This document shows positions 4,141-37,528 of a stretch of DNA of 44,959 nt, piece after piece. The notes under the pieces were generated by a model. The model was not told where the DNA came from. It saw only the letters and a program-made list of their open reading frames with translations, and did not search any database. The first letter of the stretch is position 1. The number at the start of each line of letters is the position of its first letter. Location of the stretch: contig NIVC01004464.1 of the NCBI GenBank assembly GCA_002269645.1, positions 1-44,959 on the forward strand, written 5' to 3'. The DNA is from Macrostomum lignano. Its lineage: Eukaryota. The position numbers and the translations under genes are program-made.

Positions 4141-4265
4141 CTTGCTTGCATGAGATGTGCCACCTTGCTGGTTCGAGCCACCGGCCAACTGCGCCGGTGT
4201 CGGCATGTCTTTCTCGTGCGTGTAGAGCGTGAACCAGTGCAACTTGTTGTCCAGGGCTCTTCGCT
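4141..4265 (-). CDS. Coding exon 14: last C2A strand ([14 protein letters not shown])
   Basis: Acceptor caacag|AG, donor AAG|GTGAGA; phases 1 to 0. LDxxxxW[FY]xL is the typical C2 terminal strand. Confidence 0.85.
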
Positions 4266-37200: not shown

Positions 37201-37528
37201 ACGGGCCGGCCGAGGCGTGGCCGGGGTCGTTTTGAACATCCCGACTGTCGTCGCCATCGCCGGTGGAGGCCATCCGGTCTCGCGCTGTCCGACGCCGGCT
37301 CGTCTCCGGTGTGGCGCTCGCCGAAGCGCTCGCCGTGGCGAAGCCGCCAGCAACCAATCGACGGAAGCCGGAGGCGGCCGGCGAGGCGGGCATCGAGTTG
37401 GCGGGCTGGCGGGGCTTCGGCACCGCGTCCGAATCGCTTTCGCGATCGTCGACAGCTTGAGACTCGTCTGGCTGCTGCTGCTGCTGCTGCTGGCCGCCGC
37501 CGCCCCAGAGCTTCCTGACGAAGAGCAT
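4141..37528 (-). CDS. pclo: Piccolo-like (Piccolo/Fife/Clarinet/RIM superfamily) presynaptic active-zone scaffold; 14 coding exons, at least 2619 aa, 3'-incomplete
   Basis: Exons 36921-37528, 29101-29302, 26829-26942, 24809-25022, 20538-23515, 11370-13200, 11166-11272, 9439-9526, 8546-8783, 8033-8202, 6319-6531, 5445-6231, 5157-5338 and 4141-4265. All junctions are GT-AG and phase-matched with no stop. Domains are ZnF, PDZ and C2. The symbol reflects motif resemblance from memory, not a phylogeny. Confidence 0.8.
5157..5338 (-). CDS. Coding exon 13: C2A second half (RQTKY...[13 protein letters not shown])
   Basis: ORF 5104..5367; acceptor atttcag|C, donor G|GTAGAA; phases 2 to 1. Confidence 0.9.
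5445..6231 (-). CDS. Coding exon 12: Q/M repeat and C2A first half ([11 protein letters not shown]...[15 protein letters not shown])
   Basis: Acceptor acacag|GA, donor AG|GTAGAA; phases 1 to 2. Confidence 0.88.
5741..5990 (-). repeat. Coding 18-bp minisatellite encoding (QQQQQM)n
   Basis: Met codons occur at exactly 18-nt spacing (plus-strand cat at 5771, 5789 ... 5933). Confidence 0.95.
6319..6531 (-). CDS. Coding exon 11 (linker)
   Basis: Acceptor ttcaacag|AC (phase 1), donor A|GTAAGC (phase 1). Confidence 0.75.
8033..8202 (-). CDS. Coding exon 10 (PDZ-C2 linker)
   Basis: Acceptor tatgcag|A, donor G|GTAAGA; phases 2 to 1. Confidence 0.8.
8546..8783 (-). CDS. Coding exon 9: PDZ core ([11 protein letters not shown]...EIVEWNG...SYEEVQRI...EIEVVVR)
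   Basis: ORF 8542..8796; acceptor atttag|GA, donor CT|GTAAGC; phases 1 to 2. Confidence 0.92.
9439..9526 (-). CDS. Coding exon 8: PDZ start ([18 protein letters not shown])
   Basis: Acceptor ctgcag|CTG, donor G|GTAAGT; phases 0 to 1. Resembles the Y-x-FP...TRD lead-in of the Piccolo PDZ. Confidence 0.85.
9625..9923. repeat. 31-bp minisatellite (GTAGGYGGTGAGTCAGACGKTATTGATRTCA), about 9-10 copies
   Basis: Direct inspection. Confidence 0.9.
9996..10352 (-). mobile_element. tRNA-derived SINE, full length, with 16-bp TSD
   Basis: Head GGGGCCGTAGCCCAGTGATC...GGTTCGATTCC (A/B boxes); tail [33 protein letters not shown] at 9980-9995 and 10353-10368. A second copy is at 14965. Confidence 0.9.
11166..11272 (-). 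CDS. Coding exon 7 ([11 protein letters not shown]...GGVDD)
   Basis: Acceptor ttacag|CG, donor GAT|GTAAGT; phases 1 to 0. Confidence 0.8.
11370..13200 (-). CDS. Coding exon 6 (1831 nt): polyQ and coiled-coil segments
   Basis: Acceptor ctccttag|GAA; the frame is open from 13200 into ORF 11329..12675; donor G|GTAAGA; phases 0 to 1. Confidence 0.88.
13021..13173 (-). repeat. Coding CAG/CAA tract (Q32-K-Q18)
   Basis: Counted in the exon 6 frame. Confidence 0.9.
14885..15590 (-). mobile_element. Older, diverged related SINE, interrupted by the young copy
   Basis: The flanks join as GCCCATTCCGCTCTGACTCCTGAGCA|CATACAATCGCGCC...AGGCATGTACAC, matching the body of the young SINE. A degenerate tRNA-like head lies at ~15525-15585. 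Confidence 0.7.
14965..15323 (-). mobile_element. Second copy of the same SINE family
   Basis: Near-identical to 9996-10352; TSD TCCTGAGCA at 14954-14962 and 15325-15333. Confidence 0.9.
16079..17163. repeat. 23-bp minisatellite (CAGGGACTGAGTTAGTTTAGTGT), about 47 copies
   Basis: Direct inspection. Confidence 0.95.
18024..18102. repeat. (TC)n microsatellite
   Basis: Direct inspection. Confidence 0.95.
19182..19726. repeat. (TCTG)n microsatellite
   Basis: Direct inspection; source of the RQTD/CLSV pseudo-ORFs. Confidence 0.97.
20538..23515 (-). CDS. Coding exon 5: giant (2978 nt) S/P/Q-rich disordered exon
   Basis: ORF 20457..23402 extends open upstream to the acceptor ttttag|TA; donor CAG|GTGAGT; phases 1 to 0. 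Confidence 0.88.
24280..24772. repeat. 21/23-bp minisatellite (GT[GT]CAGAGGACGYCAAATGGGT); degenerate on the left, homogeneous on the right
   Basis: Direct inspection. Confidence 0.85.
24809..25022 (-). CDS. Coding exon 4 ([17 protein letters not shown]...)
   Basis: Donor A|GTGAGT. The acceptor is a weaker AAG. The exon supplies exactly the phase 0 to 1 bridge needed between exons 3 and 5. Confidence 0.7.
25291..25492. mobile_element. ~200-bp MITE with TA target duplication
   Basis: Left end TA|TACACTAGATAGGGCACTC; reverse complement of right end TA|TACACTAGGTAGGCCACTC (17/19 identical); no coding capacity. Confidence 0.75.
25500..26357. mobile_element. Rearranged, degraded Tc1/IS630-like transposase remnant
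   Basis: Plus strand ~25870-26285 gives frameshifted HTH-like peptides ([11 protein letters not shown]; [25 protein letters not shown]; STISKALE; [20 protein letters not shown]). Minus strand ~25500-25730 gives a possible C-terminal remnant (SCVGF..RH..LP*CL). Recognition is by eye. Confidence 0.55.
26829..26942 (-). CDS. Coding exon 3: Zn finger end ([24 protein letters not shown])
   Basis: Acceptor ctcag|TTC, donor AAG|GTAGGT, phases 0 to 0. WxCxxC plus the SGAWY motif is typical of RIM/rabphilin/Piccolo fingers. Confidence 0.9.
27576..28437. repeat. (TATC)n / GATA microsatellite, about 860 bp
   Basis: Direct inspection; source of the YLSI pseudo-ORFs. Confidence 0.97.
28727..28975. repeat. 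21-bp minisatellite (TATCCCCTCCTCTACCTCCTC)
   Basis: Direct inspection. Confidence 0.9.
29101..29302 (-). CDS. Coding exon 2: Zn finger first part (KCPLCLE...[17 protein letters not shown])
   Basis: Not in the ORF track. Acceptor aaaacag|G, donor AAG|GTGAGT, phases 2 to 0; six Cys in FYVE/Piccolo-type spacing. Confidence 0.9.
29318..32137. repeat. ~14-bp purine-rich satellite (AGAGGGTAGAGAAT and 12/14-bp variants), about 2.8 kb
   Basis: Direct inspection. Confidence 0.95.
32802..34880. repeat. 24-bp nearly pure-purine minisatellite (GGGAGGAGAGAGGGCAGGAGAGAC), about 2 kb
   Basis: Direct inspection. Confidence 0.95.
34917..35027. repeat. 16-bp minisatellite (GGGTTTGTGAAATTTC), about 7 copies
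   Basis: Direct inspection. Confidence 0.85.
35725..36110. repeat. 23-bp minisatellite (CTCGGACAGTCTCAGTATCATCT)
   Basis: Direct inspection. Confidence 0.92.
36600..36826. repeat. 31-bp minisatellite (CAGTTGGGATTAGAGACTCGGACAGGGATCT), about 7 copies
   Basis: Direct inspection. Confidence 0.88.
36921..37528 (-). CDS. Coding exon 1: ATG to the N-terminal helix [23 protein letters not shown]
   Basis: ORF 36917..37528; donor AG|GTGAGT (phase 2); in-frame stop upstream at 37565-37567. The motif resembles the Piccolo/RIM N-terminal helix. Confidence 0.85.

Follow-up and report, generated by a model that had tools for sequence, protein, structure and literature searches.

We analyzed a stretch of 44,959 nucleotides from the flatworm Macrostomum lignano (contig NIVC01004464.1; referred to as the window from here on) and identified on its minus strand a gene, read here as 14 exons, which encodes a giant protein with an N-terminal Zn finger and C-terminal PDZ and C2A domains. 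We conclude, with a probability of about 0.85, that this gene is the ortholog in Macrostomum of Piccolo, a bilaterian family of scaffolds of the presynaptic active zone. The evidence consists of the position of the PDZ and C2A domains in trees that include RIM, Fife-like, and Piccolo-like proteins, of their best matches among solved structures, and of five collinear elements seen along the protein, namely a Rab-binding module, a basic-LPxxP motif, a central helix, a Piccolo-type PDZ domain, and a C2A domain with all five aspartates for Ca2+ coordination. An earlier note on the same DNA had proposed a Piccolo-type scaffold that might be a less diverged invertebrate ortholog and might help to resolve the origin of the family; as described below, the family assignment was borne out, and the latter two proposals were not.

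Phylogenetic position of the window protein

A word-indexed search with three domains returned only nine flatworm proteins, and close matches in the large protein collection were exclusively flatworm proteins; the wider family was reached by an exhaustive HMMER search of representative proteins, which yielded 92 proteins with both a PDZ and a C2A domain, and names and taxa were assigned for 30 clusters. The M. lignano proteins P0009 (214 amino acids) and P0004 are 98% identical to the window model and 100% identical to it over the C2A core, respectively, in agreement with the earlier view that the host is an invertebrate. An arthropod host, to which the polyglutamine and the microsatellites had seemed to point, was rejected on the flatworm matches. 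P0009 covers the Rab-binding domain (RabBD) only, and P0004 covers the C2 domain only. As side observations, we note that M. lignano has near-identical copies of the window's gene and, further, a diverged paralog (P0002, P0008, and P0146) with about 60% identity to the window in PDZ and 64–70% in C2A.

Neighbor-joining trees with bootstrap separated RIM and the Fife-like proteins from the Piccolo-like proteins, including the window protein, at 98% on PDZ and C2A (38 taxa) and at 100% when the Zn finger was added (19 taxa), both figures being from the labelled, reduced taxon set. A phylogeny of this kind had been suggested in the earlier note, and its outcome, with the window protein outside RIM, agrees with the note's preference for Piccolo over RIM. 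The window and fluke proteins were grouped at 99–100%, and the flatworms were sister to Lingula and scallop (62%). Within the Piccolo-like clade, the order was flatworms, Lingula, and scallop, then deuterostomes (including vertebrate Piccolo), arthropods, and nematode Clarinet-like proteins. This order mirrors the species tree and is therefore as orthology predicts. Among hidden Markov models (HMMs) built for each group, that of the spiralian Piccolo-like proteins gave the window its highest scores (PDZ, 107.7; C2A, 162.5), compared with 85.8 and 124.8 for RIM and 78.8 and 91.5 for the Fife-like group.

The window protein resembles RIM in several respects, namely in its N-terminal helix and SGAWY motif, in the Pfam family FYVE_2, which also includes the RIM Zn finger, and in the identical order of Zn finger, PDZ, and C2 domains, and it could thus be thought a flatworm RIM (UNC-10) ortholog with unusually long insertions. 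We consider this hardly credible, however, because the RIM clade leaves the window protein out at 80–100% bootstrap and because its identity to RIMs is 31–35% in PDZ and 28–37% in C2A, compared with 45–52% to the spiralian Piccolo-like group. Further, the window protein has neither the K[TS]KFADG finger motif nor the RIM PDZ signature and retains a C2A aspartate pentad that RIM lacks. M. lignano also has a separate, bona fide RIM, for which the earlier note had advised looking; it is P0138 (PAA71686.1; contig NIVC01001147.1; plus two further loci), is named RIM2, and carries a RIM-type PDZ, two C2 domains, and RQLPQVP. P0138 is 33% identical to the window protein in PDZ and 30.5% in C2A. Because this separate RIM exists and falls in the RIM clade, none of the testable findings that the earlier note had named as refuting its reading was obtained. 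In the window protein, no RQLPQxP was seen in the available 2619 amino acids, which stop at the end of C2A.

That the gene is a flatworm Fife ortholog rather than Piccolo proper is unlikely, too, for reasons that require the Fife-like group to be described. It comprises small proteins from Ptychodera, Branchiostoma, Mytilus, and Homarus (~850–1160 amino acids) and from psyllids, each with a Zn finger, a PDZ, and two C2 domains; the finger is RIM-like in having K[TS]KFADG, and the C2A is non-canonical. We take this group to be Fife because its taxon spread fits that given for Fife by Orvis et al. 2022 (PMC9282427), with Fife reported in molluscs, hemichordates, and lancelets, and because its non-canonical C2A fits the description of Fife by Bruckner et al. 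2017. Fife was first recognized by the likeness of its PDZ to that of Piccolo, it has, like the window protein, a single Zn finger, and our exclusion of it is indirect in that a stand-in group, not an authenticated Fife, was compared. Against this, the putative Fife-like group, whose taxon spread is that given for Fife by Orvis et al., is set apart from the window protein at 98–100% bootstrap, and its HMM gives the window the lowest score. The finger motif and C2A of the Fife-like proteins likewise differ from those of the window protein, which has the full aspartate pentad and, at ~2600 or more amino acids, is not small (about 1000–2000 amino acids being the size expected of Fife). The assignment to Piccolo is thus preferred over Fife.

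Other candidates for Fife were considered and rejected. One of these was a clade of arthropod proteins (Limulus, Tachypleus, Pycnogonum, Procambarus, and Timema). A search with its profile returned only chelicerates (spiders, ticks, and mites), crustaceans (shrimps), hemimetabolous insects (cockroach, termite, locust, mayflies, and stick insects), and nematodes, and no Holometabola, which fits what Orvis et al. 2022 (PMC9282427) describe as "arthropod Piccolo." The Lottia and Lymnaea matches from the same search are mollusc RIMs. A long-branch spider "RIM2" (P0125) was the other; it contains RQLPQVP and is therefore RIM. With Ptychodera P0151 as the query, ten relevant matches came up, and those after them were mostly synaptotagmin-like proteins and rabphilin.

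Domains and motifs of the window protein

Each of the features listed in the earlier note, i.e. the N-terminal helix, the CPLC finger, SGAWY, giant low-complexity exons, PDZ, and C2, was found. The Rab-binding helix begins at residue 172 and is followed by a Zn finger of four CxxC pairs, CPLC, CTDC, CYDC, and CSIC (C232/235, C249/252, C257/260, and C276/279), and by SGAWY at residues 289–293, so that helix a1/SHD1, an eight-Cys Zn finger, and SGAW[FY]/SHD2, by which a RabBD is recognized, are all present. Pfam FYVE_2 (PF02318) matches residues 174–294 with 62.8 bits over profile positions 1–115 of 118, and the best solved-structure matches of the module are rabphilin-3A (1ZBD_B; E 5.5e-11) and melanophilin (2ZET_C; E 6.7e-10). 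The module as a whole thus scores as a rabphilin/RIM-type Rab-binding domain, FYVE_2 passing its cut-off and zf-piccolo not, which corrects the description of the CPLC finger as closer to Piccolo in the earlier note. The finger does share the motifs CP[LI]C...(T)EL and EW[LVM]C..CQ with Piccolo-like proteins and lacks the K[TS]KFADG of RIM and Fife-like proteins. The RabBDs of rabphilin-3A and melanophilin (1ZBD and 2ZET) have the same helix, Zn finger, and SGAW but no PDZ and belong to other families, and the match to them likely indicates the role of the module, i.e. binding of Rab-GTP, rather than family membership.

The PDZ and C2 domains were detected by Pfam with 31 and 81.6 bits, respectively. 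Among solved structures, the top match of the PDZ is Piccolo 1UJD (69 bits, compared with 48–52 for RIM1/2), and the best single-domain match of the C2 is Piccolo C2A 1RH8 (101.5 bits, compared with 85 and 77 for RIM2 C2A). A lead-in to the PDZ, Y-x-F-P-x-K-R-x-L-L-T-R-D, is common to the window protein and all Piccolo-like proteins and is absent in RIM and Fife-like proteins; the pattern used was Y-x-F-P-x-[KR]-[RK]-x-x-L-x-[RK]-D, which the window protein matches. All five aspartates predicted to coordinate Ca2+ in C2A are kept (D2497, D2503, D2560, D2562, and D2568). This DDDDD pentad also occurs in flukes, in spiralian, echinoderm, and amphioxus relatives, and in vertebrate Piccolo; the variants are xNDxx in RIM, DDNDE in the arthropod clade, and DNDDN in nematodes.

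Two further motifs lie in the giant exons 5 and 6. The basic-LPxxP motif (residues 956–966), a putative ligand for the SH3 domains of RIM-binding protein, stands N-terminal of the PDZ. Its counterpart in vertebrate Piccolo reads KRTLPNPP, and in the relatives from Lingula, scallop, amphioxus, echinoderms, and chelicerates the form is RR[RK]LPxxP. The central helix spans 54 residues (1548–1601) with the consensus vP..lK.LK..LkeEL..vT.eRR. It is found in Lingula, scallop, sea spider, horseshoe crabs, sea urchin, and starfish with 20.9–91 bits, the window protein scoring 79.4 bits with the same model, and vertebrate Piccolo has a weak match at the corresponding position. We know of no description of this motif. 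By sequence, residues 1784–1826 form a second helical, coiled-coil-like stretch.

Gene model and points that weigh against the assignment

The single spliced open reading frame (ORF) of 2619 codons proposed in the earlier note was reproduced exactly: with the boundaries read base by base, 14 exons (Table 1) are joined across 13 introns into a coding sequence of 7857 nt, or 2619 stop-free codons. The 13 junctions counted in that note are all GT...AG and phase-compatible, and most introns have a pyrimidine tract. An in-frame stop lies 12 codons 5' of the start ATG at 37528. Exon 14 stops at a splice donor (AAG/gtgaga), which leaves the ORF open on the 3' side, and because P0004 runs on for ~150 amino acids past C2 that are absent from the window, the 3' end lies outside the window. 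Further, the 5' end is possibly incomplete, since in the public M. lignano model P0009 an acceptor near 37562 (minus strand), 5' of the ATG, is joined to an exon from farther upstream; either the locus has further coding exons 5' of 37562 or P0009 fuses a neighboring gene. The upstream exon of P0009 encodes repeated ...GSAMRLRSKKNM... peptides and is absent from the window. Apart from the 3' end and possibly one 5' exon, the gene is complete in the window.

The giant exons are open beyond what shuffling gives: exon 5 (2978 nt) is open over 992 codons and exon 6 (1831 nt) over 610, compared with maxima of 269 and 356, respectively, in 300 shuffles, and each contains short motifs kept in other phyla. 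The exons have 57% GC, compared with 44.5% for the introns, and the alignment with the Opisthorchis ortholog is gap-free over the exon 3/4 junction. In the protein as a whole, 15.7% of residues are Gln, 11% Ser, 10% Ala, and 8% Pro.

Several points weigh against the assignment to Piccolo. The neighbor-joining trees are built on 235–370 columns, and the internal nodes of the Piccolo-like group are weak (40–64%); the label "Fife-like" derives from size, domain set, non-canonical C2A, and taxon spread; and all functions are assigned by homology. With Pfam zf-piccolo (PF05715), the finger scores 21–24 bits, under the 30-bit cut-off that Lingula, amphioxus, and starfish pass. The window contains no C2B; the ~150 amino acids of P0004 beyond C2A are without a Pfam C2, and among the relatives, the proteins of Lingula, scallop, and fluke show a single C2 and those of amphioxus and starfish two. 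The Zn finger is single, as the earlier note had it, and vertebrate Piccolo has two; since Lingula, amphioxus, starfish, and chelicerate members are also single-finger proteins, however, two fingers mark vertebrate Piccolo and Bassoon and not the wider family. Finally, the membership of the 14 exons in one mRNA is read from the sequence alone, and the M. lignano and Opisthorchis annotations have two genes at the locus, one with the RabBD and one with PDZ-C2.

The last two points bear on whether the 2619 codons are a chimera, in which a RabBD gene (exons 1–4, with or without exon 5) and a PDZ-C2 gene have been joined in frames that are compatible by chance. The divided public models (P0009 and P0004 in M. 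lignano; T265_04271 and T265_04273 in Opisthorchis) and the length of introns 1 and 5 (7.6 and 7.3 kb), which are packed with satellites, would fit such a chimera. We nonetheless regard it as very unlikely, given that 13 of 13 junctions are canonical and phase-compatible over 2619 codons without a stop and that the curated RefSeq proteins of Lingula, scallop, amphioxus, and starfish have the Zn finger, RRxLPxxP, the helix, PDZ, and C2 in this same order within a single protein. The Opisthorchis protein OON23671.1 (2637 amino acids) likewise unites the Zn finger with the PDZ-C2 part. A single gene of the Piccolo family thus remains our preferred reading of the locus.

Regarding the flukes themselves, in one Opisthorchis viverrini assembly T265_04271 (FYVE finger, 856 amino acids) adjoins T265_04273 (PDZ-C2, 2443 amino acids), and OON23671.1, with finger and PDZ-C2 in a single protein, comes from another assembly; the O. 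viverrini proteins concerned are P0011, P0158, and P0157. The two-gene split in the fluke is probably an annotation artifact.

Comparison with related proteins

The closest counterparts are invertebrate Piccolo-family proteins, among which we count the "Piccolo" of Orvis et al. 2022 and of which we compared Lingula anatina XP_013412341.1, Mizuhopecten yessoensis XP_021364815.1, Opisthorchis viverrini T265_04273/OON23671.1, and the "Protein piccolo" of Schistosoma japonicum (2200–2600 amino acids). These share with the window protein, in collinear order, the helix, the Zn finger, SG(A/L)W(Y/H), RRxLPxxP, the central helix, the PDZ with its lead-in, and a C2A with the full pentad. The window protein is 50–52% identical to Lingula and scallop in PDZ and 45–48% in C2A, and 64–67% identical to the flukes in C2A. 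It differs from this set in being far richer in polyglutamine and in having an extra residue in the LPxxP motif (RRKSLPPPP). More broadly, the best relatives outside the flatworms are the Lingula protein LOC106175070, the scallop protein LOC110457754, "PCLO" of amphioxus, and "piccolo(-like)" proteins of crinoid, starfish, and sea urchin, which all have 2200–3200 amino acids and one N-terminal finger ~1500–2200 residues N-terminal of the PDZ. The echinoderm and amphioxus proteins that we term Piccolo-like may be the "Chalumeau" of Orvis et al. 2022.

Vertebrate Piccolo/Aczonin (PCLO) sits inside the same clade as the window protein and shares with it the aspartate pentad, the PDZ lead-in, a CPLC-type finger, a basic-LPxxP motif before the PDZ, and a giant disordered body. 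Unlike the window protein, it has at least two Zn fingers without a Rab-binding helix or SGAW, is ~5000 amino acids or more in length, and carries a C2B. Its PDZ and C2A are only ~40% identical to those of the window protein, and the central helix is only weakly detectable in it. Using platypus Piccolo as the reference for divergence, we found that the window protein is 41.5% identical in PDZ and 39.7% in C2A, compared with 58.5% and 56.4% for Lingula, 60.6% and 55.3% for scallop, 61.7% and 66.7% for amphioxus, and 61.7% and 46.3% for Limulus. On these figures, the flatworm copy is among the more diverged members of the family, contrary to the "less diverged" ortholog of the earlier note (Lingula, scallop, and amphioxus lie at 55–67%).

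RIM/UNC-10, which works at the same active zone, resembles the window protein in its N-terminal PDLSHLTEEER helix, Zn finger, SGAW, and the order of Zn finger, PDZ, and C2A. It differs in forming a clade of its own, in its K[TS]KFADG finger, in another PDZ signature with no lead-in motif, in a C2A without the second aspartate, in RQLPQ[IV]P between C2A and C2B, and in size (1100–1700 amino acids). Clarinet (CLA-1) of Caenorhabditis elegans is alike in its giant repetitive or disordered N-terminal part and C-terminal PDZ and C2 domains, and in the trees CLA-1-like proteins of nematodes join the window protein in the Piccolo-like clade; the nematode C2A has DNDDN in place of the full pentad. The similarity of CLA-1 to the vertebrate proteins is reported for PDZ and C2 only, hence without a Zn finger. 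Drosophila Fife is set apart by description, being smaller and having two non-canonical C2 domains (Bruckner et al. 2017).

Proposed function

From these likenesses, we propose how the window protein might act. The PDZ-C2A end would anchor the protein at the release site, and the C2A would sense or bind Ca2+ in the manner of Piccolo C2A, which is a Ca2+-binding domain. The disordered middle of ~1700 residues, rich in Gln, Ser, Ala, and Pro, would extend from there into the vesicle cloud, where the N-terminal helix, finger, and SGAWY would capture Rab3- or Rab27-GTP on synaptic vesicles; the corresponding modules of rabphilin and melanophilin bind Rab-GTP in solved complexes. The LPxxP motif may recruit RIM-binding protein and, through RIM-binding protein, CaV2 channels, and the protein may cooperate with the separate RIM of the animal, an arrangement reported for Piccolo, Fife, and Clarinet.

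Published work on the relatives offers precedents for each of several steps. The common C-terminus of Clarinet has been shown at the release site, and Fife, which has non-canonical C2 domains, localizes to the active zone (Bruckner et al. 2017). Recruitment of RIM-binding protein is known for Bassoon, which uses a PxxP motif, and recruitment of RIMB-1 for CLA-1; further, Fife and CLA-1 cooperate with RIM. Because a RIM-like helix and SGAW(Y/H) are kept beside a single Piccolo-type finger, we also raise the possibility, which we hold only tentatively and rate somewhat doubtful, that non-vertebrate Piccolo proteins are direct Rab3/Rab27 effectors, that this ancestral Rab-GTP tether was swapped in vertebrates for a helix-less double finger, and that the central helix is a partner-binding site that has so far escaped description.

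Relation to earlier work on the Piccolo family

The statement in the earlier note that Piccolo was long held to be vertebrate-specific is historically correct and has been superseded: Orvis et al. 2022 (PMC9282427) reported Piccolo in Aplysia, in Octopus, and in many arthropods, found it widespread in molluscs, and assigned Clarinet to the Piccolo family. Invertebrate Piccolo genes are thus already known, and the flatworm gene adds a member to a known family. The same study placed both Piccolo and Fife before the protostome-deuterostome split, so the suggestion that the window gene helps to resolve the origin of the family does not hold; the picture of that origin is unchanged, as better-conserved orthologs (Lingula, scallop, and amphioxus) were already public.

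Flatworms were not among the taxa sampled by Orvis et al. 2022 (PMC9282427), and Platyhelminthes now join the taxa that have both RIM and a Piccolo-family gene. The window provides a near full-length model (2619 or more amino acids) of a gene that the Macrostomum and fluke annotations break into RabBD and PDZ-C2 pieces. Of modest interest, as is this model, are the retention by invertebrate Piccolo-family proteins of a RIM-like Rab-binding helix beside a Piccolo-like finger and the presence of two short conserved motifs within the "low-complexity" body. Because M. lignano is experimentally amenable, the gene could be used to test the function of the Rab-binding N-terminus, of LPxxP, and of a Ca2+-competent C2A.

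Coordinates and surroundings of the gene

Table 1. Positions in the window of the 14 exons, of motifs within them, and of repeats around them (aa, amino acids of the 2619-residue model; bp, base pairs)
Feature	Position	Strand	Residues	Content
Exon 1	36921..37528	-	aa 1-202	ATG; disordered Q/acidic N-terminus; most of the Rab-binding helix; donor GAG/gtgagt, phase 2
Exon 2	29101..29302	-	aa 203-270	end of helix and first three CxxC pairs (CPLC, CTDC, CYDC)
Exon 3	26829..26942	-	aa 271-308	fourth CxxC pair and SGAWY
Exon 4	24809..25022	-	aa 309-379	basic Ser-rich linker
Exon 5	20538..23515	-	aa 380-1372	giant, disordered; putative SH3/RIM-binding-protein ligand motif
Basic-LPxxP motif	21788-21756	-	aa 956-966	in exon 5
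Exon 6	11370..13200	-	aa 1373-1982	polyglutamine tract, conserved helix, second helical stretch
Central helix	12675-12514	-	aa 1548-1601	in exon 6
Second helical stretch			aa 1784-1826	in exon 6
Exon 7	11166..11272	-	aa 1983-2018	linker
Exon 8	9439..9526	-	aa 2019-2047	PDZ lead-in
Exon 9	8546..8783	-	aa 2048-2126	PDZ core
Exon 10	8033..8202	-	aa 2127-2183	linker
Exon 11	6319..6531	-	aa 2184-2254	Q-rich linker
Intron 11	6232-6318			87 nt
Exon 12	5445..6231	-	aa 2255-2516	(QQQQQM)n coding repeat; first half of C2A including Ca2+-loop 1 (D2497, D2503)
Coding minisatellite	5735-5986			18-nt unit, ~14 copies, in exon 12; (QQQQQM)n of the PDZ-C2A linker
Exon 13	5157..5338	-	aa 2517-2577	middle of C2A; Ca2+-loop 3 (D2560, D2562, D2568)
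Exon 14	4141..4265	-	aa 2578-2619	end of C2A; terminates at donor
Intron 1 satellites	27575-36825			satellite DNA dominates
14-bp array	29321-32137			206 copies
24-bp array	32794-34855			86 copies
Intron 5 satellites	16074-19727			satellite DNA dominates
Upstream intergenic DNA	37765-43294			mostly tandem arrays of 22-, 20-, 36-, and 34-bp units and (ATCT)n
Ty3/gypsy-like pol remnant	36-3067	+		aspartyl protease, reverse transcriptase, RNase H, integrase (Pfam)

The splice call for intron 11 is based solely on its GT/AG sites and AT-richness; its length is a multiple of three and it has no in-frame stop, and its retention would therefore add 29 residues with the frame kept. The (QQQQQM)n minisatellite of exon 12 stays in frame and could therefore be length-polymorphic.

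The GC content of the window ranges from 39 to 62%, and micro- and minisatellites are many. No convincing gene was seen in the upstream intergenic DNA (37765–43294); an ORF lies farther out at 44281–44799. The two long introns are filled with satellites: besides the 14- and 24-bp arrays listed in Table 1, they hold 238 copies of (TCTA)n, 23- and 31-bp arrays, 136 copies of (TCTG)n, and 48 copies of a 23-bp unit, and several of these arrays produce long spurious ORFs in every frame. At the other end of the window, the pol of the Ty3/gypsy-like retrotransposon is spread among three or more reading frames and extends beyond position 1 of the window. In the sense of the scaffold gene, it follows closely on exon 14 and probably belongs to the intron after that exon.

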